A stretch of DNA of 64,000 nucleotides from assembly GCA_004431415.1 (NCBI GenBank), contig QPMI01000005.1:806001-870000 (forward strand). The letters are read 5' to 3'. Position 1 is the stretch's first letter; every line of letters begins with the position of its first letter. Below, piece after piece: positions 4,401 through 50,638 of the stretch. Position numbers and translations under genes: made by a program. This DNA comes from Cyanophora paradoxa CCMP329. Its lineage: Eukaryota > Plantae > Glaucophyta. A model generated the notes under the pieces. The model had not been told where the DNA came from and did not search any database. It worked only from the letters and a program-made list of their open reading frames with translations.

Positions 4401-4449
4401 CTCATCAAACTGCATGCTCGTCTATATATTCTCTTAATCATGAGGCGAT

Positions 4450-6036
4450 GATTATAAGACAGGCCCCCGGCTGCATGCGGTTGGTAATTATATAAATATA
4501 TTATATAAATAGCCGCCGAGCTCGAGGCGCGGCGGACACATAATCGCGATCGATGCGATGCACCAGCATCGCTGCGAATATGCCGGGCGGGTGTGCACTG
4601 CTTTGCAGCCGACGCTTAAGGTTTGGCGCCGGCCCGGCGGCAGTCGACGGCCGCAGTGCTCTAGATCTAATGCCAGCCGCATGACGCGGCGACATACCGG
4701 CGAATTCGCCGGGCAGCTGCAGGCTTTAACTCTAGATCTTCAGCTCGGCGTGTATATGCGTCGGAATTCGAAGTTTCGACGAACCTTACGTATAGTATAA
4801 ACGTATCCCTGTACGTAGCCTAGTCAGGAAAAGGAATGAACGCCCGCTGCCGGCCGCTCACCCCGCTCGATCGCGAGCGCTGCTGCAATTGCAACCGAGC
4901 CTCGGAGTCGCCGAGTCGAGCTCTCAATTGCAAGTTCAGAGTCTCACCAACGTAGCTCTTGCAATTGCAATCCGATGATCGCAACTTTTCGCAAGTCACT
5001 AAGTGTGCGCTCTTCGCGATCGATTTCAAGCTGATGGCTGCGCCGCTGCGCGTATACGGGACCTATTACCGGTACGTACTACGTATACGTATACGTATTC
5101 GTATACGTACAATGTGACACTGTGACAGCATGCGCAGTGCGCACACGTCTCCGAGGCTCGTACCGTGGCAACCGTGCTAGTAGACTCAGGGCCTGTCTAA
5201 GGCTACAACTTGCCAGCCTGGCAGGTCTTGCATACAACTAGGCTACAAGTAGTACTAGTACGTCCGGGGCCACGGCCCACAGGCTCCACAGAGTCCACAC
5301 TGAGTCCACAGCCGCAGCTGAGCCGCTGAGGACCTGATGACTCAGTGATGAGCCGGCTGGCTCGAGGGCCGTCGAGGCTCGACGCCCGGCGGCCGCTCGA
5401 GCTCAGCCAGAGTCAGCCTGTAGGCTGCAGGGCCAGTGCAGGCCGGCTCAGCCTGGCGCCCCGCCGGCTGAGCAAACTTTGAAATGCGATCGGAGCTCTC
5501 GAGAGGCTCCTTGTAGGTCTCCGGGAAGCCGATCGACGTAATCCCGAGTCCGATCGGGGTTCAAAAATACAACTAGTAGTCTAGTACTAGTACGCAGAAC
5601 CGTTTTTTTGTAAATTACGCTAATTACGCGTTAAATTACGCGACGTACGTCGACAATTTAATATTCAGTGCTAGCTGTAATTATTTTTGCTCTTTCTCCT
5701 TATTAGCCGACTTTACAGTGATCATGAGTCTACACTGAGTCTAGGTAAAGGCCCTGGCCCCTGAGGGCCTGAGGCACGGAGCCGCACGGTACATCCATTT
5801 AATTTGTTTAATCAGGCGAGGTCATTTTTTATTTGTTCTTTTAAAACAAATTAGACTCGAAAATCGGACCAGACTCGCGAGTTGCAGAGGTACTAGTACA
5901 ATGGTACCGTACTGTAACCGTGTGGGCCATACATATACCAGTATATGATTCGGGCCGCCACGTGCACTCCACGTAGTACGTCGATCGGCGAACTTCGGAA
6001 TCCACCGGTACCGCGATCGATGAATATGGAACTTCG
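4450..6036. repeat. Tract saturated with nested X-[C]-X'-[G]-X micro-palindromes
   Basis: ACA-C-TGT-G-ACA 5117-5127, TGA-C-TCA-G-TGA 5338-5348, CTC-C-GAG-G-CTC ~5149, CAG-C-CTG-G-CAG ~5213, GAG-C-CTC-G-GAG ~4897, and (TAC GTA)n runs at 5070-5110. Confidence 0.85.
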
Positions 6037-6051
6037 AATTCCGTGCTGATA

Positions 6052-9000
6052 TTTTTTTTTTTGGTGAATTACCGGCCACAGTCTCTAGACACCAGCACTG
6101 CGGGGGCTGCCCAGGGGGCATAAAGACAAAAAAGCAAAATAACTAAGACAAGAGCACGAAGAAAGATAAGACAAAGAGCCAAAATCGACAATAAAAAAGG
6201 AAAGACACAGAGCTCGAAACAGATCGATAGCGAGAAGAGACGATAAATCGAGCAGATCTAGGGACAGAGGAGAACTGACACGAAGAAGAGCCAGAGCTAG
6301 AGATACCATCAATATCAGAAGGAATTACATCACTAAGAAGCGGGGGACAAAATTGAGAAAGATAAATAACAGGAAGAAGACAAGTAAGAGGAACAACAAG
6401 ACGACATGGAGGCGGAGGCGAAGCAGGACGATGCGAAAGGGCAGAGCTACGGCACGAGGTCGAGGAGGACACAGGAGGCGGAGCAGGCGGATCAAGAGCA
6501 GGCAAAAGGACAGTCAAAGGAATCACTAAAGCCGGCCGGGGTCGAGGCGGGCAATCGAACTGCAAACGACGGCGAACAACAGGTCGAGCACGAGGACTAT
6601 AGCTAGTATTGAAACTAACTCTAGCATCAACACTACGATCAGAATCCGAACCAGACCGAACTAAACTAGAAGACGAAGAAGTACGCCGGCGCCGGCGGGA
6701 TACGATCGCGACCATCGAAGCAGAAGACGAAGGCAAAAGCGGCAGTCCGGTATCAAGAACAAAGGCCGGAGGGTCCGGCCCGGCAAACCGCCGGAGGGAA
6801 GTAGAAGGAGCCGCAGGCTCGGCAAGCCGGCGACGGGTACGTCCTCGAGTCCGGGAGGAGATCGGGGAAGCCGGTCCCGGAGCTGAGGGCCCAGGAGCAG
6901 AGCCAGGAGAAGGTAAGCCCGGCGAGAAATCTGACCCGGAGCCGGAACCCAGCGAACGACGACGACGAAAAGGCCCCCGAGGAGCCACGACGGGGGAGCT
7001 ACCGAGCAAAGTACTGACAGCCGGCGCCGAACACGGCGGCGGAGGTACCCCACAGACAGTGGCAGGCGGAGAGTCCAGGATCGATCGAGAGATCCGCCGA
7101 CGGGAATGCGGCGGGGGCCGACGAGACGGAAGAGGCGAGGAGGGAGCCGAGAAAGGGTCGGAGGCAGGGGAAGGGCCGCGAGCAGGTGACGGGGATCGCT
7201 GCCGGCGCCGAAGAGACGGCAGCGAAGCAGGAGAAAGGTCGGGTGGCGCCGGATCAGATGACACGGAGGTCATGGCCATGGGCGGCGCAGAGAGAGACGA
7301 GCTCGAGGGCGCAAGGGCCCGACGAGGGCGCCGGCGGCGAATCTCACGAGCGCCAGGAAGCGGGAGAGGACCCGCAGATGGGACCCGAGGCGCCGAAGGG
7401 GGAGCAGGGAGCCGGAATGACGGGGAGACCGAAAAGAGGACAGTCTCGCCAACACTCGGAAGCGGGGCAGAGGCTGAGGACCCGGAGCTCGAGGGGGGGA
7501 GGGAGGGCGGAGGAGGAGAGAGAAGGCGGCTATTCGAAGGGTATGGAGAATCGAGAGCGGAGGCGAGGGAGGCCGAAGTGATGGCGAGCTCTGGAGGCGA
7601 GGGGGCCTGCAAGCGGATCCGGGAAAGTGGATGCAGACGCAAAGAGACCGGGGACGTAGAGGCGGGAGGGGCATGCAAAAAGATAGTGCCGCCCAGCGTC
7701 ACAGTTGCAGAAGCGGGGGCAAGAAGGATGGGCTGAAGAGGGGGCTGAACCAGGAGGACGTCAGAAAGAGGGCCTCGCAGGGGCGGAAGTGGAGGAGCAA
7801 GGGGAAGAGGTAAGAAGGGGTATGGAGCTGCAAGATGACCAGGGACCTGCCGGGGAACAGGCAAGTGAAGAGGCCCCGTGACAGCAAGTTGTAAGGAGGG
7901 AGGAGGCAGAGGCGGGGCCAGAGGGCCAAGGAGCACAGGGATCGGGACCGCAGGGAATGGGGGGAAAGGAGCGTCGAGAGGGGCAGCGAGAGCAGGAAGA
8001 GGAATGGGCCCAAGGGTCACTACAGGGGCCAGAGCAGGAGGGGACGGCGCAGGAGGCGGGCGACCACCAGGGATCCCCAACGGGACATTCCCACGAACGG
8101 CAAACTCCGCAGGTTTCCGGAGGACAGAATCGATGTCACGCGAAGAGACGAGGTTGTCAGCACCGCCCGAAGAAGGAGCGCCGGACGAGTCAGAATCAGA
8201 GCTTGAACTAGAACGATGAGAACCGGCACCAGACTCTGAATCATGTGCGTCATCATCCGAGGCAGCCTGATCATCAGCGTCAGCAGCAGCCAAGCGAGCG
8301 CGCCGCTCCTCCAACAAGGCCGAAGCCTGCGGAAGGGTGAACTCGAGGTACGACATATTTCTGTCCCAGGCGGCAACAAGCGCGGCGCGGTTGTAAGCAG
8401 GTGCATCAATGTCAGCCTCCTCAAGATCGCACCGAGCGCGAGCAACCTGTTGGATGGAAAATACGCCAGCAAGGATCGCTCCAAGTGATCGAAGGCAGAA
8501 GGCGGGGTTAACTTTACTGCGTAAAATGGGCCCAGATAAATCCGGAACCGAGAGGATGTGGAAGAGAGAGAGGTCAGGCACTGCGACCTCTTCACGCTCA
8601 TCCGGTGGAAGAGTAGAAGCCCAGAAATTCAGGCGCTCACGAATGAAATCCCAGAACGAACGAGAAAGCGGGCACTCAGAGAAAACGTGCGCGTGAGAGC
8701 GAGCAGATCCGTCATTACAAACCCGACAGAAACGACGGCGGGGCGACTGTTGCTCGCCCAAACGATACAATTTGAATTGCAAACGGTAAAGAGCATCGAT
8801 CCAAAGCATCGGAAAACACTGAAGGACGACAAGATTAGGAAGACGGGACGGAGACAAGGCGCCGGGAAACCCCCACTTAGCATCGGGCATCTGAGCGTGG
8901 CTAGACACATCGCGAAGCCGCTGGACCTCAAGGCAGTAGAAGCGTCGAACAGAGGAGAGGCGGAGAGGGAGCATACGAGCGAAAGTGAACGCAAGATTAT

Positions 9001-10276
9001 CAAGAGAAAGAAAGGCCGAAGGACCTGCGCCAAGAACAAAAAGGCCAGGCAGGGTCCCGCGACGAAGAGAGAGGAAGACAGCGCTGAAGCAAACATGCAG
9101 CGGGAGCAAACGGGACAGAATTGAATTGGAGCTCGAGGATAGGCCCACAGGGTGGGAAGCCGCAGGGCGGCAAGGAACGCGCGGTACGTAGTCCAGCACC
9201 CGTGGAATTATCTGGTTATCGCGAACGGGGAAGGCAACAAAAGTACCACTTGGGCCTCGAAGGAGAGCAAACGAGGCGTCCGGTCCGGACCACCAGAGAT
9301 GCTGAGGCGGCGGTGCAGGGGCCTCGAGAACCTGGCGCCAAGTAGCCGGGAGCGCAGAGCACAGACTAGGGAAAAAGGAGTGGAGGGCGGAGGAGGCAGC
9401 TGCTGGAGCCCGGAACCCCCGGGCAGCACAATCCCAGATATCGCAGACCCGCAGCAAGCCGGACCGTGCACAGCGACTCCAGTCGACCTCGTCGCCGGGA
9501 GTTCTGAACAGAGGATTGAAGAAAAGAGGTTGGGATAACACTTCGGGAGAGTTACGAGGTTGACATACGCCCTGGCGCTGAGCCCACTCGGAGAGAGTCT
9601 GCTTCCAAATAGGAGGCAAGTCAAGTCTGTCAAGTGGGAGGCGGAGCGAGACAAGGCGGGGCCATAGGAAAAAGGTGCCAGCTGAGCGTCCAGTTTGCTC
9701 AAGAGGTACTCCTTCCAAGGAGCCGAACAAGAGGGTCAGCGAGCAAGGCCACCCACTTCATTTTCAGCGATAACGAAAAAGCTCGAATATCCGGGCAGTT
9801 GAGACCACCTTGACGCCACGGCAGAGGAGAAATATACTTCGAAAGCTGCCCGCTCACGCCAGCAAAAGCGCGAAGCTTCTCTTGCCATGTCGAATACTGA
9901 GCATCAGGGGGATCAAGCAAATATAGAGCATAATGTAGGGACCCAATAAATACAGCCCAGGCAAGGAGAACGCCGGAACGCATCGGCATGCGATAAGTCT
10001 TCGCTTGCTGGACACGGATATCAAGAGCAGCGTTCTTTTTCCGCCAGAACCGAGACAGATCGGGCTCTAGTGGAAAGCCCAGGTATTTTCGAATTTTTTC
10101 AGCGGGAGGGAGATCCGTCACCTGAAGACGCCGCCAGGGGCAGTCCTCGGCGCTAGGCCAGGCATGTGCGGGGATATCGCGGAGTGGAAGAAGGCTAGAT
10201 TTCTCGAGATTAATAAGCGCTCCAGAGAGCCGGCAGTATTTATCAAAGCACTCTTTCCAGAAAGGCAATTCGGTAA
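6052..10276 (-). mobile_element. 5'-truncated non-LTR retrotransposon (L1/Tx1-like LINE)
   Basis: T11 tract at 6052-6062 is the poly(A) tail on the minus strand. Exact 15-bp TSD AATTCCGTGCTGATA at 6037-6051 and 10277-10291. RT C-terminal motifs and a CCHC zinc knuckle are encoded inside. Confidence 0.93.
6143..10268 (-). pseudogene. LINE ORF2 remnant: RT C-terminal/thumb region, zf-RVT and a long Pro/Ser-rich tail
   Basis: GALINLEKS, KYLGFPL, GGLNCPDI..KMKW (9699-10268). Continues via PWKEYLL in a second frame, then LPPIWKQ..PLFFNPLF and CRVC-x8-HVFSECP (6143-9730). About two frameshifts near 9630-9730. Confidence 0.85.
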
Positions 10277-10434
10277 AATTCCGTGCTGATAATACTAGAA
10301 TAGTCTTATATCATAGTATATATCCTCTTCCCGGGAGTCCGACGGTCCGAACAATTTCCGAAGTCCGTCTTACTTCAGGGCCAAGTTCATTCTTTCATGG
10401 TTCGAAAAATTCCCGAGTCGACGTCCTGAGTATC

Positions 10435-10790
10435 GATATCTTTCTCACTTCTGTCCTTCGTCGATTTCGTCTGCTGTCACAGGCTGTCGTCAGCTTTTTC
10501 GTGCATGTGTCACAGTGTCTCTCCCCCTATTAAGTAATAAGCTTCAAGGGGCCTCTTGTCTATTCGTTTTAGTTTGGCTCTTCGTCTTGTCTTTCTTCGT
10601 GCCGCGCTCTTGTGACGAGTCTTGTCCTAGTTACTAGTATTTAAATTTTGCTTTTGCTGTATCGATCAGTATCGCCGAGTCGATAACTGTGCCCCCTGGA
10701 CAGCCCCCCCAGTACTAGTGCTGGTCTCTACGTAGTCTAGACTCTAAATTTAGACTGTCGGCTGCCGGCTATTCGAATTCTAATTTATAA
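10435..10790 (+). mobile_element. Old, degenerate copy of the LINE 3' end in opposite orientation, invaded by micro-palindromic insertions
   Basis: Aligns to the reverse complement of ~6060-6370 (tttggctct..gtct..tctttcttcgtg, tgccccctgg.cagccccc.cagt[actagt]gctggt, agactgt..gccgg..attc). Confidence 0.75.
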
Positions 10791-12748
10791 AAGGGCCACT
10801 GACTTGCCGCGCGCGTCAGTTGGGTCCGGGGAAGGGCATGTAACCGCGGCGTATCCGAAGATCTAGATGCAGAGAGCAGGGACTTAAGCATAAGCTTAAG
10901 CTTAAGAAGGCGCACGGTGCACGTGGGCGGGCGAGCCGGCCGCGGACCGGCTCCGAGGCTGGCCATGCCAGGCGAGCTGTCCTCGCGATCGAGGCGAGCT
11001 GTCCTCTAGAGGTAGGTAGGCCTCAGGGCCTAGCTATATAGTGCGCGGGCCCCGGGGGCGGGGGATGGCTTGCAGATTGAACCTTGTATGGACGTGCTCG
11101 ACCTTCTGCGCATGCCCCGCGCGCGGTCGTCGCGCGCGTGAGGCGTGGCGGGTGCACGAGTGCGCATGTGCTGCGGGTGCGTCACGGCGTGGCGCGGAGG
11201 CGCGCGGCGCCTAGGCCTAGGCCTAGGGCCGGGGCTGGCGCGGCCTAGGCCTCCGCGCGCGCGATCTGGGCGCGGGCGCGGGGACGCTGCTCAAGCTCAC
11301 ACTCCGCTCAGAAAGCGGCCGGAGGCCTAGGGTCCGTAAGGGCGCTTGCGCAGCGGGCCAGCTCATGATCAGCGGCTGCAGCAAGCATATGCATGCGCAT
11401 CGCGCGCGCGGGGGGGGGGGGGGGGGGGGTCTGCGTCGCGCGCGCGCGGGCTCTCCGTCGCGCGGCGCGCGCGCCGCGCGGGCGTCGGCTCGTTGCAAGT
11501 GGCATAGCCGGCCAAGTGCGGCCGGCTTGCGGCCGTCTTGTGCAATTGCGTCGGGGCGTGCGCGGTTGGCGCGGCTAGCCGCTGAGCCACAGCAAACTGC
11601 CGCGCGCGCGAGAGGCGTAACCATTGTTGAGCCGAGCCGAGCTGAGGCGCCCGGGGGAGAAATCGGCTGGGGGGGACCGTAAAAAGACTTTTGCAGGGTA
11701 AGTTAACGCACTCTCCAATTTGATTGGCTAGCGCGCGCGGCATCCTCCCACGCGACCGCGTTCGCGCCCGGCCTCGCTCTTGCAGTACGGAGTGTCGCGC
11801 GTGATGCGCGCAACGACCTCGAACTGGTCTGGCCTGTATATCTGCTCCCTGTGCGTCGCTGGACCCATTTTTGTCCCGGGTGTTGGTGCCTGTTCCTGGA
11901 TCACCCTTTGGTCGGACGGGACCGGGAGACATGGTTTCGGGGTCCCCTGAGGATGCGCTTTCAGGGTGTACCGCGCGGCCCCGGTTTTGCGGAGGTCGGG
12001 GAAATGGGATTTGGGGTAGGGTTGGGCCCAAGGGACAGGGACAGGGGAAGTGTTTTACCCTTCCCCAATAACTAGGTTTTCGACTCGCGCCCGCCCCCTG
12101 CTCGTCTCAGGACTGTGATGCGCAAGATCGAAATGGGGTCTAAATCAAGAAAGACGTGCATCGACACTGTGACAGCGCTAGCATCCACTGGGCCAGTTTA
12201 CGATCGCTGACGCTAGGCGTGGGGCTGGACTGCCAGACTTGAATAGCCCGTAGCAGCTCGCAGTGCAGATCTAGAATTCGAACTGCAGCTGAAATTAAAG
12301 CTCTGCGCGCCGTGCCGCCGCCCGCACTGCGGCAGTCTCCGTCCCGCCCTGCGAGCAGCGCCGCCGCCTTCTGCGCATGCTCGCCCCCGCTCCGCAGCGA
12401 CCGTCGGACCTGCGCACACAGATCATGATCAGTGACTCGGTGACAGAGCCGACGTCGGTGTCAGGCGACGTCGGTGACCCGACGGTGAGCATGCATATGC
12501 ATATGACCAGTACTGCGCATGTGCATGTTGGCCTGCTGGCTGCAGCCCTAATTATAAAGGCGGCAGCCGTGACTGCACCATTGCGCGCGACGGCAGGTGC
12601 GCATGCTGCGGCTGGCGCCGCTGTATAAACTTCGTCGACGTCGCTGCACGCTTCGATTTTTTACTTCGGTTCACGCTCCCCCCCCGGGCCCTCTCCCCCA
12701 GAAAGTTATCGCCCCATATACATTGAGAGAATAAGGAGACGAAGACGA

Positions 12749-12780
<32 letters not shown>

Positions 12781-13122: not shown

Positions 13123-16100
13123 TTAAGGGGCCAGGATCCGGACCATGGAGGAGGAGTGGGGCGGGCGCGGGCCCGGGGCCCGGGCCCCGACCTTGGATGC
13201 TAGGGAGCGGGTCCGGGCCCCGGATTTGAAAGAAGTTATAAGCTCACAACGAAGCTTGAAGCTCTAAAGAAGTTTTGAAAGCCTCTAAAGAACCTAGGGC
13301 GGGGCGGGGCCGGCCCGGACCTCATTCTTAAGCTCACAAAGAAGTTGGAAGCCCTTATATATGAAGCTCTAAAGAAAGAAGTTTTGAAAGCTTCTCAAGG
13401 CCAAGGGCCTAGGGCGCGGACCTCAGAGGCGATCGCGAGGGAGCGGAGGGAGCGCCGGAGGGGCAGGCCGGCCGCCCCCGCCCCCGCCTCGGGCCCCGCC
13501 CCCGCGTACACGCCGTCCACACGCTGCGCGGAGAGATAAGGGTCGAGGCCCTAGGAGATAAGGGTAGAGGTCCTAGGGAAGTGGCAGTCATCGTATACGT
13601 AAGAGGCCGCCGCCCCGCCCAGGAGTCCTAAATCCTCTCCCCCACTCCCCCCCTGGGCGAGGGGGGAGTCCCTTTTCTCTCCGGGTACACGCCGTCTACC
13701 CGCTGCCCCCGCCCCGCCCTGCCCGCCCCCGTCAGCTAGCTAGCCTCACCTGAGAAGGCCCCGTCCCCTGCACCCTCCCGGATTCAATCCGCAAGCTGTC
13801 CTACCCCCAGGCCGCCTCCCTCCTTCTCCCCCCATCCCCTGGGGGGTACGGCACGCAGCACGCAGCACTCAGCTAGCCTCACCTGAGAGGGCCCCTCTCC
13901 CGTACCCCGCCGGAGTAGAAGGCACTATCCTATCCCCAGGGTCCTCCCCCCCCTCCTTCGCCCCCTCCCCCCTGGGGGGGTACGGCACGCACGGCGCCAA
14001 GGAGGGTCTCGAGGCGGAGGGAAAGCTCGCGGACCGTCGAGCGCCCGTTCATGCCCACCACGACCCGCGGGGGGTCCAGCGGCCTACGGAAGGAAGAAGC
14101 GGGGGGCGGTCAGGAGGCGAAGAAGATGGATGGATGGAAGATAAGGTGAGAGCATAAGCGAGTTAAGAAGGAAAACGTATTGGGTCGCGGCGTGGCGCGC
14201 GCGCCCTTCCTCTTCCCCTAGAAGTGATTACAGGAAGATAAAAGGGAAGAGGATCAAGACAGTTAGAAGATTATAAGAAATCAGAAGAATGAACGCGCAC
14301 CCTTCCTCCTCTCGTTTCCCTTCTTCCTGCGAGGACGCGGGCCGTGCCGGCGAGCGGCGGGCGGCGGGGGCGAGGCGCAGCTCCACGCGGCACTCGACCC
14401 GCTCCGCGTCCTTAGGAAGAAAAAGAAGAAGAAAAGGAGGGGTAAGCGAGCTTTCAAAAGGGGGGCGAGGGGGCGAGGCGGGGTTACCTCAAAGGCGCGG
14501 GCGAGGGCGCGGGGCGCCAGCACGCGGGGCGTCTGCGGCGGGGGCGGGAGGGGGTGAGGGGGGGGGGGGAAGGTCAGAGGCAGAGGGGGGGGGAAGGACC
14601 CCTTGCTGGGAGCGGCCCCCCCACCCAATTTCGCCTAGCGTGTTAGCCTCTTCGCTCTTATCTCCACTCTCTTCTTAGGCCTAGGCCTCGGATCGGAGGG
14701 CGGGGGCGGGAGCGGGTCTTCTCGGGTCTTGGCTCTTCTCTCAGCTCCGCCTCCTCAGGTCTTAGGATCGGAGGGGGGGGGGGAGTAGGGGGGGTACGCG
14801 CCTGGCCGGCGTCGTTCTCGCGCGTGAAGTCCGCCCCGAAGCGCAGCAGCAGCTGCACCAGCGCCTCCGCCACCTGCCCGCAGAGCTCAGGGCGGCGTAA
14901 CAGGCTTGAGAAAGAAATTTGCTCAGATAGGTCCGGCCAGGCAGGGAGGGGGTTGCCCCCCTCTCCACGCGCCGCTGTTTCCAGCGGCTCGGCCGGACCA
15001 TAGGCGTAACAGGCTTGAGGCTTAGGCGGCTGGAAGCTGGAGTCTACAGTGGAGCAGAATGGCGGTCCGCGCCGAGGCAGCGGGAGCGGCGGGGGGGGGG
15101 GTCGGGAGGAAAGCTTAGGGCGGCTGAGGCGCAAAGCGTGGGCGCGAAGCTAACAGAAGCTAAGCTGAGGAGCGGCTGCGTCGCCGCCTTCGTCCGCCAG
15201 CCCCCGCCCGCCGCGTAGCCTAACGGAAGCCGCCTAAGGCGGCTAGAAGCTAAAAGAAGCCGCCTAAGGCGCCTGATAGAAGCCAATGCGGCTTGAAGCT
15301 AATCTAGAAGCTAAGCTGAGGAGCGGCTACCGAAGCGCCTCCACCGCCTTCGTCCGGCGCCGCCACTCTTAGAGCGGAACAGGCTCGAAGCCAAGGTGGC
15401 TGAGGAGCTAAGCTTGGAGCGTATAGAAGCTGAGCAGAGGAGCGGCCGCCTTCCGCTCAGAGAGAAAGAGAGTCGAGTGGGAGGCAGCGGACGGGGCGGG
15501 TCGGGCGGGGAATGGCGGGAGCGGCGGCGGGCGGGGTGGGGCGGGGCGGAGCGGGACGGGAAGGGGCGGGAAGGGCGGGGCGGGGGGGGGGATGGGGGAG
15601 GGGGGGGCGGAAGGGGGGGGGGGGGCGGGCACCTTTGCCGGCATCTGGACGCTGCAGGCGTAGTGCAGCGCCGTGTTGCCCCCCGCGGCCTGCGCCAGGA
15701 GATGGCTCAGAGGGACAACGAGGTGGAAAGGAGGGGGGAGGGGAGGGGGAGGAGGGCGCGGGGGAGGGGGAGGGGGGAGGAGGGCGCGGGGGAGGGGGAA
15801 GGGGCGGAGGGGGAGGGGGGAGGGGGGAGGGGGAGGGGTGGAGGGGGGAGGGGGAGGGGGGAGGGGGGGGAACGGGCGTAGGAAAAAGCTGTTAGATAGA
15901 AAGCTAGAAGGCTATTAGAGGGCCATTCGATATCACAATCTTGAAGCTACAGACAACGACATTAGATATCGTTGGGATATCTAAAATCGTTGACAACGAA
16001 GCCGGCGCCGGCGTATAGAGAGAGAGAAAGCTATAGAAAGCTGGAAAGCTAGACCTAGCTTCATTTGATGGAGAGCTAGAGACCGATATATAATAGTTTT

Positions 16101-18832
16101 CGAAGCTGCCGGAGGGGGCACCTGGAAGTCGAAGTCGGCGCCGGCGTCGAGGAGGGCCCGAGCGGCGTCTAGGTGACCCCCGATCACCGCCAGCTGGGAG
16201 GGGAGTAAGGGGCGTAAGCAGAAAGCTAAGGCTGGGGGGAAGGGGGGGTACCTGGAGGGCGGACTGGCGGCCCTCCCCCCACGCGTCCGGGTTCGCCTGC
16301 CCGGGTACGTCAGTCCCGTGATTATTCTCGTACCCCTGCAAGGGGTCTGTCCGTTCGAGGAAAGGACGGGATGGCGTACCCCCGCGTCGAGGAGGACGCC
16401 GAGGATCTCGCGGTACCCCTTCTGGGCCGCGATCAGAAGGGCGGTAGCCCCCGACACGAACTGTCGGTCCACCTCCGCTGCGGCGAAAGGTTGGCGAGGG
16501 GGGTACGGGGCAGCCGGGGGGTACGGGTAGGGACCGCCGCGGGACAGGAGGAGACGAACGGTCGAGAGACGACCGTACTCAGCCGCGACGTAAAGCGGCG
16601 TGGCGCCCTGTACCCCCCTCAGCGACGCGGAGGATCCGCGAGGGGGGTACGCTCGCCTCGCGGGTGGCGACGTGGACGGCGCCCGGGGACGCGTCGAGGA
16701 GCACGCGAGCGGCGGCGGCCTCGCCGGCGCGAGCCGCAACGAAGACCGGCGTCTCGCCCACGGCCGACCTGCGCCGATTCCAGAGTCGGGAGGGGAAGGG
16801 GGTACGGGCGGAAGGGGGGCGGGGGTACGCGCACGGCAGGTCCGCCGTGGCGTTCGCCGCGAGGAGCGCCTGCGGGGGGTACAGGTACAGGATAAGGAAA
16901 AGGAGGAGCCGACGGGTACGGGGCGCGCGCCTTGATAAGTTCGGCGAGGCCGGCTCCCGCGGCGATGTGGAGGGCCGCGTACCCCCCCGCCCCCGCGATA
17001 TCCGGGTCCGCCCCCATCTGAGCGTCGCCTCAGATCAGATCAGAACTGATCTGATGCGATCTGATCTGAGCCGGGGGGGGGTACGGCGCACGTCCAGGAG
17101 GAGGCGGACCAACGCCTCATGCCTGTTCTCGACGGCGATCACGAGCGGCGAGGCCCCCGAGCGACCGTACCGCCTGCGGGGGGCGTCGGGGAGGGGTACA
17201 GGAGGGAGGGAGGAGAAGGGGGGTACGCACGCGTCCACGCGGGCGCCGCAGTCCTCCGCCAGTACCCGTACCACGTCGAAGTGGCCCGCCTCCGCCCTAA
17301 GGGGGTACCGGACTCAACGGAAGAGAGCCGGCAAGGGAAGCGGGGGTACGGCGCACGCGTAGTAGATGGCGGTAGCCCCCTCCCCCGAAGGGGCCTCAAC
17401 GTCCGCCCCGTGATCGCAGAGGGCCTGCCAAGGGGTACGTTAGACCGAGGGGAGGGGTACGGGACCCTTGTGGGGGGGGACGCACGATGACGGCGATGAG
17501 GTGTCCACCCTTCGCGGCGACGTGGAGCGGGCGCAATCGCGTGGCGGGGTCCACATAGTCCACCTGGAGGGGTGTACGCGCTCATGATCAAACGCGCGTG
17601 CAAAAAGAGAGAGAAGGCGAAAGGAGGTGCGAACGTAGGCGGCGGGTCGGCTCTTGTCGGGTTGGAGGTACGCCGCAACTCTGCGCACGTCGCCCCGAAC
17701 CGCTGCGGCGAAAAGCTCCGCGCTCGAGCGCGCCTCCTCCCTGGGTAAAGCGTGAGAACTGGGGAAAGGGAGAAAGGAGGGCAGGCGGGTACCGGGTGAG
17801 CTGCTTGGTGCGGTCCTGGGCAGGGCGGGGCGCCCCCACCCCGCCCGGCCCGTTCAAAAGGGCGTCCTCAACGGAAGAAGGCGGCGGTTCCCGCCCCGCC
17901 GCCTCCGCCCGAGCCGCCATCGACCTCGCCCGTACCCGTGCCCGGATCGCCGAGGCGACGTACCCCTCCGGGTCCAGCTCGTGCTCGTCCAGCCGCTCGG
18001 TACCCGGGGCCGCCTCCCCCCACCGGGGTACGTCGTGCGCCCGCCTCCGCTTGCCCCCGGGGCTGCCGTGCGAGCGATTCGGCGAGGAGCGGGACCGGGG
18101 AAAGAGGCGGGGGGAGAAGGGGGGGGGGGTACATTGCCATGTAGACGATGAGGGCCAACGCTCCCAGGGTAAGGAGGACCAGACCCAGGGTTCCGGCGTG
18201 CTTCGAGATACCCCCCCGCCACTGCGCGGGGCGTCGGCGGGGGCGGAGGACGCTTGCGAAGGGGGGGGGGGGGGGGGGGGTACGGGCGCACGCGGGACCG
18301 GGGGGGCTCCCGGTCCGACGCGAGCCGCGCGCGAGCGCGCTGCAGCTGCGCGTGGTGTGCTGAAAGGTTCTCGAGTCGCCTGTCGAGCTGCCGCGCCTTC
18401 GAATCGGACACGAAGCGGCGGCGGACGCCGCCGGCGCCGCCGGCGGAGCGCGCGACAAGCTGCGGAATGAGCTGCCGCAGGCTGAATGACGGGTGCAGGT
18501 TCTCCATCGGGGCGCGGCACGTCGGGCAGAGCGGCGCCCGCCCCGTGTCCCGTTCGAGGTACCGGACGGTACACTGCACGGCGGCGTCAGCGGGCTGCTT
18601 GTGACGGGCGGCGCTCGCTTTTCACTCCGAGAAAGAGAAGCGAACGAGCGGAAAGTGCACCTCGGCACAGTACGCGTGGCCTGCGCACGCGCGGGCTCGT
18701 CACGCACCGCGTGTTCCGCGGCGGGGCGGAGGGCGGACCGCAGACGGACTCCACGGCAGCGTCGAGAACGTCGAGGCATATTGGGCAGTGCATGCTGTCG
18801 AGCGCCATCGGGGCGGCCGCAGGTTCTGCCAT
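13123..18832 (-). CDS. Multi-exon protein: C3HC4 RING finger, one hydrophobic/TM segment, ~9-10 ankyrin repeats, short C-terminal domain; putative E3 ligase
   Basis: Spliced RING: CPIC..VCG|HAYCAE|C..CPTC. Hydrophobic TLGLVLLTLGALALIVYMAI splices in frame to PGGKRRR. Ankyrin exons: ELFAAAVRGD, RPLHVAAKGGH, GASPLVIAVENRH, AALHIAAGAG, GETPVFVAARAG, GATPLYVAAEYGR, GATALLIAAQKGY, GNTALHYAC. The 3'-most exons and the stop are less certain. Confidence 0.8.
13733..13992. repeat. ~130-bp tandem duplication inside an intron of the ankyrin gene, including the splice-donor region
   Basis: Two diverged copies of agctagcctcacctgaga.ggcccc...cccctggggggtacggcacgca (13733-13858 and 13870-13992). Confidence 0.7.
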
Positions 18833-19003
18833 GGAGCGCGTAGCGCGAACCCCGCCGCCCGTCGATTCGCTCCAAGACGCTAGCGCAACGGCCTGGGCGT
18901 GCTCTGACTCGAGCCTCTGAGCCGCCTCGGGCGCGTGCGCGTGCCGCTCCTGGGAAGCTGCGCCCAAGAGAGTCGAACCCCCGGGACGAGGGACGGGCCT
19001 TAT

Positions 19004-37595: not shown

Positions 37596-37802
37596 CGCTG
37601 CCTCGCGGCGTGCGGACCGCCGCCGCGCCTACGCTACTCGTTTGCAACGGGCGAGTTGGGTGCGGCTGTGCTCGATGCGGGTATCTGCTGCGGTTGCGCC
37701 GCGGTCAAATTCAGACGGGGACAGCAATTCTTTGTAGGGGGTACAAGCGGCCCAGCCTTCCCGCCGAGCGAGGCAGCGCGCGTGAGCCAGCATCACGAGG
37801 CG
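37596..37802. promoter_or_regulatory. Probable bidirectional promoter (~200 bp)
   Basis: Divergent ATGs at 37595 (-) and 37803 (+). Confidence 0.5.
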
Positions 37803-40800
37803 ATGGCGGCGGCGCCGAACCAGCGGGAGTTTGCGCCGCTCGCGCCGGCGGGGCACGAGTACGGCTGGCGCGACGACCACGCCCACAACGACGCGATGAT
37901 GCAGCAGCTGCACCCACGCTCGTCTCCCGCGTCGATGAACCTGCAGCTCCTGCAACCGGAGCTGGGCGCCGGCACCTACGGACGCGTGTTTAGGGCAGTC
38001 GGCGAGGACGGGAACGTCGTGTGCGTGAAGCAGGTTCCACTGCGTGACCTGCCCGACGCAGCGCGACGCGAAGCGCTGAACGAGTGCCGAGTGAGCGTGG
38101 CGCCGCGCCCGCAGCCGCAACGTCGCCGGCCCCGCTCACTGGCCCCCGCGGCGCAGGTCATGGCGTCGCTCTCGCATCCGAACATCGTCCGGTGCGCTCC
38201 CGCGAGCCGCCCGCTCCCCGCGTCGCGCCGCCCGATCCAGCCCGCCTCGCCGCTTCGGGCGCGCAGATACATCACCTCGTGGCTCGACGACCAGGTCCTC
38301 AACATCGTCACGGAGTACTGCCCGCACGGCGACCTCTCTCAGCTCATCCGCGGCCGCACGTCGTACCTCCCCGAGGAATCGATCTGGTCGCTGCTCGTCC
38401 AGATCGCCTCGGGACTCGGCTACCTCCACGACCGCCGCATCATCCACCGCGGCGCGCCCGCTCTCCTCTGCTGATCTCCGACCTCCGCTCCGCTCCGCTC
38501 CTCCGCTTACATTCTGCTTCGATCAAATCAGATTTGAAGCCCAGTAACATCTTCTTGGGGCCGGGCGAGGCGGTCCGAATCGGGGACTTCGGCCTCGGGC
38601 GCGCCCTCTCCGGCGCCACGCTCGCCCGCACGCAGACGGGTACGCCCCTCTACATGTCCCCCGAGGTGCACGAGGCTGCCTAGGCGCCCCTACTTCCTTC
38701 GTGACTCGCCCGGCCGGCCGGCCCCCCGCAGCTCTGCGAGGAGAAGCCCTACAACGAGAAGGTCAGACAAAATCTCAAGCTTAGCCTTAAGGCAACCTAG
38801 ATCTCAAGCTCAATCCAAGGATACAAGCCTAACCTTAGCTTGGCTCACCCGAAACCAATCGCTTATCTCTTCTGATCGCTTATCTCTCTTTCAGAGCGAC
38901 ATCTGGGCGCTGGGCGCGCTCATGTACGAGCTGGCCGCCCTCCAGCCGCCCTTCGTCGCATCCAACCAGATCGCCCTCGCCCGGTTCCCCCCCTGAACTC
39001 CCTCCCCCCCTTACGAGATCGAATTCTGAGGGGACCGGTCCGTCCGCCAGGCGAATCGTGGGGGAGCCCCCCGCGCCGCTGCCGCGCTGCTACAGGTACC
39101 CCCTCGCCCCCGCCCCTCCCTTTCATCCGCCCCTACCCCCCTTCTTCTCAAACCCCGTACCCCCCTCCAGCGTGGAGCTTACTTTCCTGATCTTCTGGTG
39201 CCTCGAGAAGGACATGGACCGACGCCCCAGGTTCGCTGGAGAGAAAGGGAGGGGAGGGGGGTACCGTACCTCGCGCTAGGTCCCCCTCTGGCGCGAGCCC
39301 AGAGCTCAGGCTCCGCCCGCCCTCTGCGCTCTCCTCCCCTCTTCCTCCCCCTCCCCCGCCCCTGATCGCCCCGTCGGTGGCTTGCACTGGGTTCCTCTCC
39401 CCGCTAGCGCGATCCCAGAGCCCTGCTCCCGTCCCTAACCTCCCCCCCCCCCCCCCCCCCCCCTCCCCCGCAGCGTGCAGGACGTGACGCAGTTCTCGGC
39501 GGTTCGGCTCCGCGTGGAGCGCGCCGCCTGGGCCGACCGCGAGCGCTCCCTGCTCCAGGCGAGCACCCCGCTCTTCAAGAAACGCGCCGAGAGAGCTCTT
39601 GGAGCCCCAGAGATTCTCTGACGGCGGCCGCTTAGAGATCTCTTAGAGATTGCTGGCTTTTGAGCTTCACGCTCGCCCCAAGCCCGTGTAGGGCTCTTAG
39701 AGACCGCGCTTAGAAAGCTCTTGGAGCTCCAGAGACTCTCTAAGAGCTCCCGTTAGCTTAGAGCTCCTAAGGCCCCCCTTGAGGCCCCTAGAGATCGTTG
39801 AAGCTATAGGCGAGCCGGCCGGCCCTGAGGGCTTAGAGCTTCTTAGCTGCGCTCAGCTTATGGGCCTTCGTCCGCCTCGGGGCTCACCCAGCGCGCCAGG
39901 CGGCTGAGGAGGCGGGCCGGCGGGCGGCGGAGCAGCAGAGGGGCGCCGCGGCCGCCGCGCAGCGCCTCCAGAGCGACGCGGCGTCCATCCGCGACCAGCT
40001 GGCCGCGGTGCGCGCTCACCTGAGCCGAGAGGAAGGCTCGCCTGAACTCACCTGAGCGGGCGGCAGGCGGCCGACGAGGCGGCGGCGCTGCGGAGGCGCG
40101 CGCGGGAGGCGGAGGACGCTGCGGGGCGCGCCTCGGCGCGGGCGGCGGCGGCCGAGCGCGGGGCGGACGCGCTGCGCGCCGCGCTAGCGGAGCGGGACGC
40201 CGAGTGCGAGCGGATGGCGTCGGAGCTCGCGCGGGCGATCCAGGCCGCCGCGCAGGTACGCTCCTCTCCCTCCCTTGCCTCTCTTGTCCTGCCCGTCTCA
40301 GATGATCATGAACAGGCCTCCCGCGAGAACGACCGGATGCGGGAGCAGCTCCAGGAGTTCAGGTGAGCTCTCTCGGCCCGGGCCGCCCGGGCCGAGCTCA
40401 GGCGTACCCCTGCGGCAGGGCGCGGGAGGCTGTTCTGCTTGAGTACAAGCGCCGGGTGACGGGGCAGACCTCCGTCTCGAGCCCCGCGCGGGCGGCCCTC
40501 GCCGCGGCCCTCGCCGGCGGCGGCGGCGGCGCCGGCGCAGGGCCGTCGCCCCCCAAGGCCCTCCTCGCCCACCTTCAGGTGCGCGGGGGCGTCGCGTGGC
40601 TGTGTCTTGGTCGCTCATGTAAAGGGGGGTACGCGATCGTTCTCAGGAGGGGAGCCCGCCGCCCATCCGCGCTTCGTTCGCGGCGGCGATCGCGGCGGCC
40701 TTGAAGGATCTCGAGGGTACCCCGGCTCCGGCCCCCCCGGGGGGCCCCGAGGCCAGCCCGCAGGAGCGGAGGGGCGCCGGCGGCCGCCCGTCCGCCGAGC

Positions 40801-43724
40801 CCGCTGTACCCCCCTCCTCCGCCGCGGTGGCGGCGGGCCGCCCCGAGAGCCCGGCGCCCTTCTCCCCCCCCTCCGCCCAACTCTCGCCCCTCGCCCCCGG
40901 TGCGCTCTTCTCCCCTTCCCCCCTTCCCGTTGATCTTCTACCCCCCCCCCTGACGTTTCTTCCCCCCAGTCTCCTCCGCCGAATCGTCGGGCCGGGCAGG
41001 GCGGCACCACCCCCCGACCGTCCTCTCCGCCCCCCGCTCGGGCGCCCCGCCCCCGGAGAACGTTCCCGAGGCGGGTTCGGATCCCGCCGCGGACGCAAAG
41101 GACACCGGTCGCCCCGCCTCGCCCCCGCGCGCCGGTGCGCCCAGTTATTCTCTCTTCTTATTTCTCTACCCCCGCTTGACGCCGCCTTCAGCGGCCGTCG
41201 CTCGCGCGTTGGACTTCTCGGGCGCGGGTTCGAATCAGGCCGGGCCCGCTTCCGTCCCGGCCCCCGTGGACCCCCCGCCCCCCGAGCGATCCGCCTCTCC
41301 CGCCGGCCTTGCCGCCGCCAGGTCCGATACCGGTACCCCCCTGCAGTAAACCTCACCTGAGCGGCGCCTCAGCCCCTGCAGCGACGAGGACGGGGACGAG
41401 GCCGACGGGGGGTACGGCGTGCCGGCCCCGGCGCCCGCAGCCTCCGATAGCCCCGTCCGCCGTACCGCCCGGCGCGTCTTCTCCCCCCTCGTGACGACCC
41501 TCCGCGACTCTACCCCGGCGCCGCTTCTCCCCCCCTCGACCGCGCCCGTTCCCCCTTCCGCCGCGGCCGCGGCGCCCCCGGCGCCGGCACGGGACTCCAG
41601 CCCGCCCCTCAGCCGGCCCCAGACCGCCCTCTTCCGGGTACGCAGTGCGTTTTCTCCGTTTCTACCCCTCCCGTCAGACGCGCTTCCGCAGGTGTACTCC
41701 CCCACTCGGTACTCGGTGGACGGGGGGTACGCGGAAGCGGGGGGGGACGAGGAGGAGCGGCCGAGGACCTCTCCCCCGCAGGCCACGGCCCCCCCGCCCC
41801 GCCCGGCCTCAACTTCTCCCCCCGACAACCGGACGCCCGTCCGGCCCCCGCGCTTCGAAGGCATACCCCCCGCGGCACCCTTCTTTCTTTCCTTCCCCTG
41901 ACGCCGTACTCCGCAGTGGAATCCTCGCCCTCCCGTACCCCTCCCCAGGCGCCCCCCGCCCCCGGCTCGAGTCTCGACGCGTACTATTTCGGGCTCTGCA
42001 GGCGCGCTTCGGTATCCGTCCCGCCCGATCCCACCGTCGCTCACGGCGACCGCGCAGCGCCCCGCGCGCCGCCGAGCTTGGACCCTTTACCCCCCTCTTC
42101 TTCTGGCGCCGCCACGGAGCCGCCGACTCCCCCGCCGCAACTGTGGTAAGCCCCCTCCCTCCCCTCCGCGGCCCTCTGTACCCCCGTACGATCCCGTACC
42201 CCCCAGCGCATGGAGCTGGGCCCTGCGTGGGAGAACCGCGGGCAGCACCAGCTCGCGTACCCCGTCTCCGCCTTCCTCATCGTCTACAAGGTGCCGCGTA
42301 CCCCTCTGTCCCTCCCTCTTCGCCCCCCCCCCCCCCCCCCCCCCCCTCCTCTTTCTCACCCTTCCCACAGCCGAACCCCGCGCTGGCTGAGCCGCCTGGG
42401 ATCAAGGCCCTCCGAGTGCGTCGGCGCGGGCTCGACGCGTTCGAGCGGATCGCGCGCGTGGTGCGTGGGGGGGTACAGGCCCTCCTTCCCTTCGTTCGCT
42501 TGTTTGACTTCGTTCGCTTGATAGGACGTCAAGAGGCTGGAGCCGTCCCCCGGCTGCCGTCACGCCTCCTGGGCCCGCCGACGCTACGCGGAGGTCGTCC
42601 TACCCCCCAGCCCGGGTGCGGCCTCCGCCAGGGTACACCGTCCGAACGCCCGGACCGACCCGTACCCCCGCAGGTCCCATCGGGGGTGCCCAGGACTTCG
42701 TTCTCGAGTTCGACGCAACGAACCCTGTCGATGAGGTCCGGAAAGACGTAACCCCCTCTGCAATTGCGTATCCGTTTTGAACACGGGTACAGGTGGCGGT
42801 GCTGAGGCACGATGCGAGATTCCTCGCGCTGGCGGCGGGGCCCCCTACCCCCCCGACGGCGGCCGACTCGTACCCCGCACCTGCCCCCGCTCCTGCCCCC
42901 GCTCCCGCGCCTGTTTCCGGGACCCCGAGTACGCGTTCGACTCTGCTCCGCTTCCGTTTAGTGATCTGAGTGCCCTCTGCAGGCCCTGGAACGCCCGGTA
43001 CCCCCCTGGAGCACCAGCACCCGAGCCGGGGAAACGGCTCCTACGCGGCGCTGCGGCGGTCCCTCGAGAAGTACCCCCCCTCGCCCCACATCGTGCGCGC
43101 CGCCACGTACCCCCTTTCTTCGACCTTTTGTCGCCGTTCAAACGTGAGCAGGACCCCACGACGGGACTGCACGTCCTAACGCGTACCCCGGGGGCCCTCG
43201 GCCCTCCCCTGCGCGTCCCGGCCGTTTCCAGCCCCGAGGGCACCCAGTACCCCCCGGAGGCGACCCCAAGGGGGTCGAGCGAGGGCCCCCTGAGCCCCGA
43301 GCAGATCGCCGCACTCGTCGCCCGCGGTCCGTCCCTGTACCCTCCTCCCCCTCCTCTTCGCCCCCCTAATGCCCCTGCCAGCCCGCAGCTCCGTTACTTC
43401 GTCCGTCTCGGGCGTACCCCCCCAGTCCCCCGGCGAGCGGTACTGAAGCTTGTGCTTCGTTCTGTACCCGTGACCCAGACCTGTAAAAGATGTAGCCCCC
43501 TGACGATGGGGGTAAAGTGTCGTAGTGTTAATGGGAATCCGCCCGAGCTGGGCCGCCGGGCTGGTTTCATTGATGGCCCAATGGTCGGCCTGCGGCGGAG
43601 TCTCGTCAGGCTCAGCCCGCCTGAGGAGCTCATCAAGTCAGCTCCGGCTATGAGTCATCGCGTCACTCAAGAGTCATTGGCTTGGGTGATCATGAATCAT
43701 CCGATGATCAGCTTCAGATGTTAG
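37803..43724 (+). CDS. NIMA-related (NEK family) Ser/Thr kinase with coiled-coil, Pro-rich region and a C-terminal domain
   Basis: Spliced motifs LGAGTYGRV, VCVKQV, HPNIVRY, HR|DLKPSNIFL, IGDFGLGR, GTPLYMSPE|LCEEKPYNEK|SDIWALG, CLEKDMDRRP. Coiled-coil exons ~39900-40360. The 3' end is approximate. Confidence 0.88.
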
Positions 43725-44336
43725 CCGGCCCTGCGCATGATTCGGAATTCATCAACTTTCGTCTCATTCTCGCGGCTCAGCGGCGATGACTGGCATCCGA
43801 CGAGAGGTCACACTATGACAATGATCATCGGATCATGATCACGTCACCCGTACTGGCTTCAGAGTTTGATCGCGAGATCATGATCATGAGTCATCGGCTC
43901 AGCGGTTCCGTTCTGGCGCCTCACTTGGGGCACGCACTGGCAGCTGCCAGCTGTCAATATCCAATGATTTTTCATTTGATGTTGATCATCATCGCGGTCT
44001 CTCCCTCGCGAGTCGTTAGGCCCGCCCTCGCCTTCACTCCCGCCTCATGAGCACTCCGGACGACCAGCGGCTCAGCGACTTTAATCTGAGCCGCAGACTC
44101 TGAGAGCTGCTGGTCGCCCCGGCCCGGAGTGCCCATGAGGCGGGAGTGAGGCCAGCGGCCGAGCGGCTCGGCTTCCAACACGATGCGCGACGCCCCCAGA
44201 ACCGCGCCCCAGCCCATCTACCGCCTGGAGCCCGTAGTGCGGGGCCCGAAGGCGGGGACATCTATCTATCTCGCTTCAAACACACGTAACTTAGTAACAA
44301 CCGATGATGATCCGGCCCGCCTATCTATCTATCTCT

Positions 44337-45360
44337 TTATCGCCTGGAGACCTTCATGCGCGGCTGCGCCGCCCGCGCCTCCCGCCGCTCCATCTTCCGC
44401 CGCTTCTTCTCATCCATCTCCTCCTGAGAGAGACGGAGATGAGAAGGAGAGAAAAGTTGAGAGAGGTCGAGAATTTGATGCTGATGAGTTCAAGGCGTAC
44501 CGGCTCCTCCTGCTTGGCGAACCACCAGGGGTAGATAATGTAGACCCAAGCCTTGTACAGCGCGAAGGCCGGGATCTTTCGGTACCCCAAGGTTAGATGT
44601 CGGGATACACGGAAGCGCGAGCCGGCGGGGTTACGGCCGCGAACCACGAGGTAGACGAGCCAGAACCAGTCGGAGATCATCGTACCCGCCTGCACGAAGA
44701 GTGTAATGTAAAGGACGTCGAAATAATACCTGCGGGGCGGGGCGGGGCGGGGCGGGGCGGGCGGCCGTCAGCGGCAGAGGCGCGGCGCTGGCGCGGCGCG
44801 GCAAGCGTCGCGGCCTCGGGGGTACGCACTCGACGATGCCCTTCGAGTCCAGGTCCTGACCGGCGTCGTCGATCTGGCCCTTTTCGTCCAGATCGACGCG
44901 CGCGAAGCTGGAGAGGTCGGAGTAGATCTTGTAGTAGACGAACGAGGTCACCGCGAAGCCGATCCAGTGCCACGTGCCGAAGGTCCCGAAGTGGAACAGA
45001 ATGCGGTAGAGCACGAACGCGGCCTGCGGTGCGCGGGGAGCGTCGGCGGGATGGAAACGGGCGCCGCGGGCGGGCGGGCGGGCGCCGTGGGAGGCGGCAG
45101 GACGGTAGCAGGCGCTAGCTATGGCCGCGGAGGCGAGCGGCGCGACCGTCGGTGGCGGGCGCGAGGACCCAGCGCACATTGACGCCGGCAATGTACTTGA
45201 GGTGCTGCTGGAGCTTCTTCTTGTTGCGCTCCGCGACCTTCTTCTGCGACTGGTTCGCCTGCGCGCGCGGGGCCTCCCGTCAGCGCCCTGTGCGCCGCCC
45301 GGCAGGCTCGCTGTTCGAGGCGGGCGCGACCCTCCGAGCCGCTCCAACCGCCTCCACCAT
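44337..45360 (-). CDS. TMEM208: TMEM208 / SND2 family ER membrane protein
   Basis: Spliced protein M|ANQSQKKVAERNKKKLQQHLKYIAGVN|AAFVLYRILFH...DAGQDLDSKGIVE|YYFDVLYITLFVQ..SDWFWLVYLV|IPAFALYKAW...|EEMDEKKRRKMERRE...RR*. This is the typical SND2/TMEM208 pattern. Confidence 0.9.
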
Positions 45361-45558
45361 CGCAGCTAGCCGACCCACGGCGCTGCGCGAGAGGCTGGCG
45401 GGGCGGCGCGAACCATTTTTTCGCTTCCCGGGTACTGCGAAATTCAAAAGAGAGCGCCGCCAGCTCGAAGCCGAAGGGCACAGCCAGAGCGGATTCTCGC
45501 ACAGATTGGCGGCCCGACGTTACAGGAGGCTTAGCTAGCGCACAGCGGGCCGACAGAG
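45361..45558. promoter_or_regulatory. Probable bidirectional promoter between TMEM208 and IFT56
   Basis: Divergent start codons 198 bp apart. Confidence 0.55.
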
Positions 45559-48766
<3,208 letters not shown>

Positions 48767-49636
48767 CGCCTTTCGGGATTCCCCGGCCGCGCGGCCCGCG
48801 CCCCCCCTTCCCTCACCCTCCCGCCTCCCTTCCCCCGCTACCCCCGCCTCCCGAGCTCTGTGCATTCCATTCCATTCCGGTCTGCTTCTTTGCCTGGCAC
48901 ACCTGCAGAGCGAAGAGAGCTTGCACAGTACTCGTGTTGCACAGAGCATGATGCGCAAATGATGAGACTGCAGCTGAGCACGTTACCCGAATTCGAAATT
49001 CCCGAATTCGACGCGGTCGACGTCGACGTCGACCGTACGCGTCGACGTCCCCGGGGCCCGCGCCGCCCGGGCCCCGGGCCCGCCGGGCCGGAGTCGACGT
49101 CCGCGCGCGGAATCGCCGGGCCCGGGCCGTGTAAGCCCGTGTATATATATACCGTACATGTACAACGGTAGACTCTGAGACTCCGCAGTACGTACTACGG
49201 TAAGACTTCGTGATCATCGCGATTCAATGATTCGCGATCGCCGCGGATCCGAGCTCGAGATTCCCCCAAGTTCCGCCGGCCCGGCGGGCCGAGTTGCAAA
49301 CTTGCAATTGGCGAGTCACTGAGTTGGCGATCGCCGGTCCACTGTCCGACGCCAACTCGGAGGGGGGTACGGGAGAACGCCGTGGTAGAACTTCGGAACT
49401 CAAGTTGGCCTTCCGCGGCGCCGCAATTTGCCAAAAAAGTTCATCATGATCAAGTTGGGCCGCCGCGCCGGCTGTAAGTCTGCCATGCAGGCCTAGGCCT
49501 AGGCTGCAGCTGTGACTCTCAGTGTCACAGTGTCGATCACAGACTGTGAAGTCTGTGAGTCACTGATGCCTGATGACTCAGTGTCAGAGAGTCAGTGATG
49601 CCATGATGAGTCAGCGGATTCACTGACTCAGCGCAA

Positions 49637-49899
49637 CCGTAGATCTAGAACACTTAAGTAATGCGCGCACTTAATTAATGCGCCCCCGAATTAATGCGTT
49701 TTCCGGCAGCAAAACGCATTAATTCGGGGGCGCATTAATATCGAAACGTTAAGAAACTGCATTATGTACCCCCCAACCGCGGCCAAAAAGCTTCAAAACG
49801 CATTAATTCGGGGGCGCATTATTAGCCACACTAGGGGCCGGTCCGGGTCCAAAAACGCATTAATATCGGGCGCATTAATTAAGTACTAGTGTTCTACGG
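49637..49899. mobile_element. MITE related to the 21568 element (different subfamily)
   Basis: After removing one 6-bp insertion from each end, the TIRs read CCGTAGAACACTTAAGTAATGCGC and CCGTAGAACACTTAATTAATGCGC. TA on the right flank. Internal aaaacgcattaattcgggggcgcatta repeats. Confidence 0.82.
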
Positions 49900-50024
49900 T
49901 AGCGCGCCGGCGCCGGCCGCGGGCGCCGCCAGCGCGCCCCGGCGGCCGGCGGCGGGGCCCGGGCCCTGGCCCCACCGTGGCACGCCGGCCCCGCGCCGGG
50001 CCCATTAAATTACGCCGGCCGGCG

Positions 50025-50120
50025 CGTAGGGCACTAAATTACTACTGCGGCTACTACTACTGCCGCACTGCGGCAGCCTGGCAGTGCGGCGTTAATTAAC
50101 GCGGTTTCGAAAATGCGGCA
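50025..50120 (-). mobile_element. Terminal fragment of the 21568-type MITE, expanded by nested insertions
   Basis: cgtagggcactaaattact...tgcggcgttaattaacgcggtttcgaaaatg matches the revcomp of 21777-21829. Confidence 0.78.
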
Positions 50121-50638
50121 TGCGCACTGCTGCCACTGCGGCATGATCATGATCAGCGGCCGCGGCTTCTCGCGCCGGCGGGATATCGATCAGCCGCCAT
50201 CAGGCTGTCATCAGCGAGCATGCGCGCTGCGGCAGCACTGCGGCAGCTAGCGCTGTATGCGCAAGTCGCAGCGCAACACACGAGCTCCTTGCGGCCGCGG
50301 CCGGCTTCCGAGTTCCTCGCTATGGCCATGATCGGGTCGTCGCTATAGCTAGCGCTAGCGCTGGGCACACACGTAAAGCTACGCATGCGGATCGGGACCA
50401 CATGCATATGTATATATGTGCGCCTAGCCTAGTAGCTGTACTAGTATACGTATAGGCCTGCAGCCGTGCAGCTGCAGCTGCGCATTAGCATGCAGGCCAG
50501 TTGCAAGGCGTGACGGGTCCCCGCTGCCGCGGCTGCGAAATTTTAAAGGCGGAAGACGCGTACGCGTACGCAAGCCTTAGCACGCGGCGAGGCGCGTCCC
50601 GATCCGGATCCCCCTCGACCGCGATCGCGAGCACACAC

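Follow-up and report, generated by a model that had tools for sequence, protein, structure and literature searches.

What has filled the spacers between genes of the glaucophyte alga Cyanophora paradoxa with short palindromes of one fixed form? The question is raised by a 64,000-bp window of the strain CCMP329 genome (contig QPMI01000005.1, positions 806,001 to 870,000; coordinates below are those of the window), in which a triplet X is repeated on either side of its reverse complement X', either directly, as X-X'-X (+6 bp), or with two extra bases, as X-C-X'-G-X (+8). We show that X has become X-X'-X or X-C-X'-G-X at any triplet, with nesting of one event in another, and that this constitutes a dense and unusually uniform mutational signature. 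The motifs probably mark sites from which cut-and-paste DNA transposons, able to duplicate any 3-bp target, have been excised; two families were probably at work, the one behind +8 being apparently CACTA-like. A literature search returned no description of such a motif, and the paper reporting the C. paradoxa genome (99.9 Mb, probably haploid, mean intron of 86 bp; PMC6704402) makes no mention of palindromes. To a first-pass annotation of this DNA, which had described the motif, the present analysis adds the missing +7 class (a single extra base), the split of +6 and +8 between introns and spacers, and a flank test that bears on template switching and on Transib geometry.

The window is eukaryotic DNA with numerous short introns and a GC content of 61%. 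Over its whole length, X-X'-X occurs 366 times against 28 in shuffled sequence and X-C-X'-G-X 74 times against 4.4, with a peak at an X of 3 bp (k = 3). The intergenic set comprises seven blocks (10,609 bp) whose limits were set by eye from gene structure, excluding the body of a long interspersed nuclear element (LINE), a satellite, one high-copy repeat and two very short promoters (0-1 events); an order-2 Markov model served as background. These blocks contain 196 X-X'-X motifs (8.5 expected) and 66 X-C-X'-G-X motifs (0.8 expected), the same design with other base pairs giving 8 (G,C), 3 (A,T) and 3 (T,A). At k = 4 the counts were 3 and 2, and at k = 5 there were none; the excess at k = 2 is partly overlap with k = 3, falls after the collapse described below and persists in part. 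Nearly all triplets are used, at near-flat frequencies, the spectra of +6 and +8 being indistinguishable (chi-square p = 0.36), and long exons stand at background (1 motif, 1.5 expected). All eight 11-mers cited in the first-pass annotation lie exactly where it had placed them, and the enrichment of (C,G) over (G,C) and (A,T) and the peak at a 3-bp X were both borne out.

Iterative collapse of the blocks removed 164 +6 and 70 +8 events, about 22 per kb of spacer, amounting to 1,544 bp or 14.6%, where Markov controls yielded 3-12 events; 16 events were visible only once an inner event had been removed. The earlier description of spacers "built from" motifs to a "saturating" level was right about the reality and density of the motif and overstated its share, perfect motifs making up about 15% of the spacers, with block values of 5-31%. 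After collapse, +8 motifs with one mismatch numbered 61 against 13 expected (35 against 12 for the G/C control), an excess pointing to an older layer of scars beneath the perfect ones. Short-read contigs from four runs are identical to the window, with zero differences, over 19515-20657 and 21804-23700; the motifs are thus present in reads and are no assembly artefact. Chance palindromes, selected regulatory motifs or misassembly might be suspected in GC-rich DNA with low-complexity runs and block limits set by eye, but the 80-fold excess, the use of all triplets, the polarised and nested insertions and the four exact short-read assemblies refute such explanations, to which we attach almost no credence.

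The direction of change was read from repeats. A fixed-grammar collapse, which replaced a noisy unrestricted greedy one, was applied, and an event was taken as polarised when its removal improved the alignment to a cleaner copy of the repeat. Fourteen events (seven +6, seven +8) were polarised, two of them +6 events in paralogs elsewhere in the genome and 12 by collapse in the window (five +6, seven +8), the latter upholding the earlier view of the motifs as insertions whose collapse improves repeat alignment. Controls gave no case for C-first +7, (G,C), k = 4 or reversed-not-complemented designs, one for G-first +7 and four weaker fits for k = 2. On the plus strand, collapse of three nested +8 events at 50061-50087, in a fragment of a miniature inverted-repeat transposable element (MITE), restores the terminal inverted repeat (TIR) sequence of that family exactly, and a full copy carries one +6 event per TIR (49641-49649 and 49882-49890). 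An old LINE 3' copy on the minus strand holds four events within 10508-10719 (+8 at 10508-10518 and 10672-10682, +6 at 10640-10648 and 10711-10719), together with unparsed insertions. The remaining window cases are a +8 with X = TGC at 34568-34578 (minus strand) in another LINE 3' copy, not present in the young copy near 6100, a +8 with X = TTC in one unit of the 40-bp satellite (19327-19337, plus strand) and, on a weaker alignment, a +6 with X = ATG in a duplicated intron (51008-51016, plus strand). In paralogous repeat copies elsewhere in the genome, both of the 6-bp insertions listed read X-X'-X (CCA at 21777, TCG at 22119). As in an excision footprint, the 14 polarised events are net insertions relative to an unoccupied paralog and keep both outer copies of X, which a target-site duplication (TSD) requires.

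Reverse-complement repeats have another known origin, template switching (PMC8794818), and short-range replication template switching or polymerase theta-like fold-back repair could formally produce X-X'-X; collapse does leave behind some direct duplications and longer palindromes. The template-switch mutations of Loytynoja and Goldman resemble our motifs in being short reverse-complement repeats, whereas they vary in length and are fully templated from nearby DNA; the fixed 3 bp seen here (3 motifs at k = 4, 0 at k = 5) is left unexplained. For +8, moreover, the template would need a C before the site and a G after it, and only 12 of the 66 sites have them. The C and G were therefore not copied from the flanks, which argues against hAT and Transib geometry and largely refutes template switching for +8. 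Other eukaryotes also lack the signal: in 242 kb around IFT56 the motifs were only about 2-fold enriched, and C and G showed no preferred order (16 vs 18). Taken as a whole, this explanation is very unlikely. The nearest IFT56 relative, a 935-bp transcript too short to judge, has no motifs, and neither a search for genomic DNA of a close relative nor a look-up of exact proteins gave a match. An unrelated metagenome locus (L035, Ga0257106_1010171) holds 9 C/G and 6 G/C motifs, probably reflecting GC low complexity.

The fixed 3-bp length, the flat target use and the non-templated C and G fit an element with C...G ends and a 3-bp TSD, as the first-pass annotation had proposed, although scans of the window, with Pfam applied to selected reading frames, found no such element or transposase. 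CACTA elements have CACTA ends and a 3-bp TSD (PMC3193017). The scars, with their k = 3 peak and nearly all triplets used, would correspond to a 3-bp TSD with little target preference, and of the ends only the first base can be recovered, as the C...G of +8; on these grounds the +8 source would be CACTA-like. Reading the ends as C...G assumes opening of hairpins on the 3' side, as a G-starting element opened on the 5' side would yield the same letters. Other sources fared less well. The 8-bp-TSD geometry of hAT gave zero matches for TSDs of 6-9 bp, and matches for 4-5 bp vanished after collapse. Transib elements have a 5-bp TSD, and a C-NNN-G-type TSD cut with the hAT offset would also give +8, but C precedes and G follows in just those 12 of 66 sites. 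TAA/TTA, the TWA target of PIF/Harbinger elements, whose excision is mostly precise, was used in 1 of 164 +6 and 2 of 70 +8 events, and the near-flat triplet use excludes TWA-specific elements. The window's own MITE (21566-21831 and 49639-49891) was ruled out as the scar source, since it looks TA-flanked.

Insertion would give X-element-X, after which a transposase would nick the top strand at each end and seal the flank into a hairpin. A nick at the border would leave a hairpin X|X' without an apex, and a nick one base inside a C-starting element would leave that C as the unpaired tip. If a host nuclease then opened each hairpin immediately 3' of X', 3' overhangs ending in X' and X could anneal over 3 bp, and fill-in and ligation would produce exactly +6 or +8. 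Repair would proceed by end joining, and since the alga is probably haploid and mostly clonal, with no homologue to restore the site, nearly every hop would leave a fixed scar. It is established that hAT, Transib, RAG and MULE form hairpins on the flanking DNA (PMC5499845). Comparable systems include hAT elements (Ac/Ds, Tam3, Ascot-1), which leave inverted flank copies at the empty site and join by microhomology, as in the P-nucleotide joints of Ac/Ds (PMC5873905, PMC4561436); their palindromes, however, are heterogeneous, have the complement of the flanking base at their centre and accompany 8-bp TSDs, whereas the scars here have no apex or a fixed C, a 3-bp unit and two dominant products. 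In RAG V(D)J coding joints, Transib and the MULE Muta1, the flank likewise forms a hairpin, which Artemis or another host nuclease opens (PMC5499845), but Muta1 sites are more than 90% precise. Tc1/mariner and Stowaway also leave terminal element bases at the donor site (PMC4561436), yet with a TA target and no inverted TSD copy. CACTA/En-Spm (CMC) elements share the C...G ends, the 3-bp TSD and excision footprints (PMC3193017; bioRxiv 10.1101/342816), but differ in that the literature search gave no stereotyped X-C-X'-G-X or X-X'-X footprint and no biochemical proof of flanking hairpins for them.

Hairpin excision as originally put forward does generate both main classes, but with an optional C at each flank +7 should be the dominant class, and it is missing. 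From the 164:70 ratio, about 214 +7 motifs would be expected if the ends chose C independently. Only 33 have the described orientation (X-C-X'-X or X-X'-G-X), none of them polarised, against 47 in the opposite one (X-G-X'-X or X-X'-C-X); about half of the +7 motifs in either orientation are overlaps of other classes, and after collapse, triplets containing A/T gave 11 against 16. The +7 form is a minor class at most, and the rule of C first and G last, sound for +8, fails for +7. The two main forms also differ in distribution: the +6:+8 ratio of spacers is 164:70, and that of three gene bodies, whose motifs are mostly intronic as judged by eye, is 94:8 (Fisher p about 2e-5, background subtracted). 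The LINE open reading frame (ORF) carries 11 +6 motifs against 1.2 expected and no +8, as its reading frame would require. The missing +7 and the differing distributions together make two processes likelier than one optional C, the more likely source being a pair of element families or of transposases: a C...G-ended CACTA/CMC-like family would give +8, mostly between genes, and a border-cutting family +6, in introns and the LINE ORF as well. A single transposase that cuts both ends in concert, at the border or one base inside, would likewise give +6 or +8 and rarely +7; it would account for the common 3-bp length, the shared triplet spectrum and the co-occurrence of both forms in the same blocks. 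The strong difference between gene bodies and spacers would then call for additional selection against intronic +8, and we consider this variant unlikely. The scar-bearing introns (gene 1, the Cys-repeat gene and the CUB gene) are AT-richer, and introns rich in GTACCCC/poly-C (13500-18300, 39000-43500, some genes) have few scars.

Several results weigh against excision by transposons. After collapse, G-first +7 and (G,C) motifs still exceed background, most of those inspected looking like overlaps. Neither a polymorphic allele nor an element-versus-scar allele was seen over 18900-23700 in the four runs, seemingly of one strain. A scan of the window for TIRs with 3-bp TSDs returned no C...G element, only low-complexity noise; a CACTR search showed no evident paired ends, and Pfam scans limited to selected ORFs found no transposase. 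Of the further hallmarks of CACTA/CMC, a TnpD-type transposase (Transposase_21) and subterminal repeats, the window likewise yielded none. In experiments, hAT excision gave 28 footprint types among 128 clones (PMC5873905), a heterogeneity unlike the near-binary outcome here, and for CACTA our literature search, which covered the classic footprint papers incompletely, found neither flanking hairpins nor such a footprint. A rival source is a host- or virus-derived enzyme acting without an element: a domesticated transposase, or else a nuclease/ligase that cuts with a 3-nt stagger and adds an untemplated C before hairpinning. The density of events, their extreme uniformity, the lack of an element in the window and repeat hits at the same triplet (11 of 66, about 3 expected) speak for such an enzyme; it would nevertheless need X duplication, hairpinning and C-specific addition, all three of which transposition covers, and no candidate was found, which makes it improbable. 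That an element-free hairpin mutator writes +6 and +8 into open chromatin near gene starts, as a main source of non-coding DNA, we hold to be equally doubtful. Nothing supported the domesticated transposase of the first-pass annotation, nor is one needed on a rough estimate for transposon excision: with 100 active copies, each moving once every 10^5 generations, a haploid clonal lineage might accumulate several 10^5 scars over a few 10^8 generations.

Within the window, spacers adjoining a gene start are denser in scars (13-31%) than two convergent spacers, at 34340-35150 (5%) and 43500-44400 (9%), although data are few. The densest block lies between divergent genes (19600-20627; 14 +8 and 33 +6, 31%) and is identical in the four short-read runs. 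The others are the spacer upstream of the minus-strand gene 1 (4400-6050; 11 +8 and 23 +6, 14.5% of length), a spacer that includes the old LINE 3' copy (10290-12700; 13 and 39), a scar-rich spacer at 21080-23000 (8 and 21) and that between IFT56 and the CUB-repeat gene (48770-50655; 17 and 40, 20%). Two very short head-to-head promoters, at 37500-37800 and 45400-45559, hold 0-1 scars, which suggests purifying selection or no targeting.

Gene 1 occupies 1-4350 (minus strand) on our reading of gene structure; the other genes are RING/ankyrin-like, Cys-repeat, NEK-like kinase, small membrane-protein, IFT56 and CUB/WD40. The LINE, a 5'-truncated retroelement without long terminal repeats (LTRs), lies on the minus strand at 6052-10276, has a weak zf-RVT match and a long Pro/Ser-rich C-terminal extension, and is bounded by a 15-bp TSD (6037-6051 and 10277-10291); a homologue search with its ORF gave no match. 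With its TSD (6037-10291), it directly abuts the old LINE 3' copy, a member of its own family, and the same GCTGATA motif is found beside a third family copy (34349-34632), hinting at a site preference. The repeat at 20628-21079 is LTR-like, starts with TGTTCGG and has a very high copy number (summed contig depth to about 10^5 against about 90); it bears no scars and is therefore probably young. The MITE family (21566-21831, 49639-49891, fragment 50018-50112) has CCGTAG...CTACGG ends, apparently TA flanks and many genome copies by depth, and gave no match in metagenome and viral contigs. We take it to be Tc2/pogo-like. The satellite (18990-19570), made of partly palindromic 40-bp units, lies immediately upstream of the RING/ankyrin-like gene, with related high-copy sequence around 19385-19540. 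A short repeat at about 22100-22140 has a depth above 2,000 and a +6 scar in one paralog.

Cut-and-paste hops normally leave no countable trace. If the scars are indeed excision footprints, each hop leaves a parseable mark in C. paradoxa, and the genome would be a datable map of past transposition, with possibly 10^5 events or more by extrapolation from this window, were it typical, in a genome described as having little repeat expansion. Repair after excision would then be a real source of promoter-proximal DNA, contributing about 15% of the spacers in the window. The reading also predicts that CACTA/CMC transposases form flanking hairpins when they cut and place their first nick one base into the element, a point we did not find settled in the literature. 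The scars matter for alignment, motif discovery and estimates of indel rates in this model glaucophyte.

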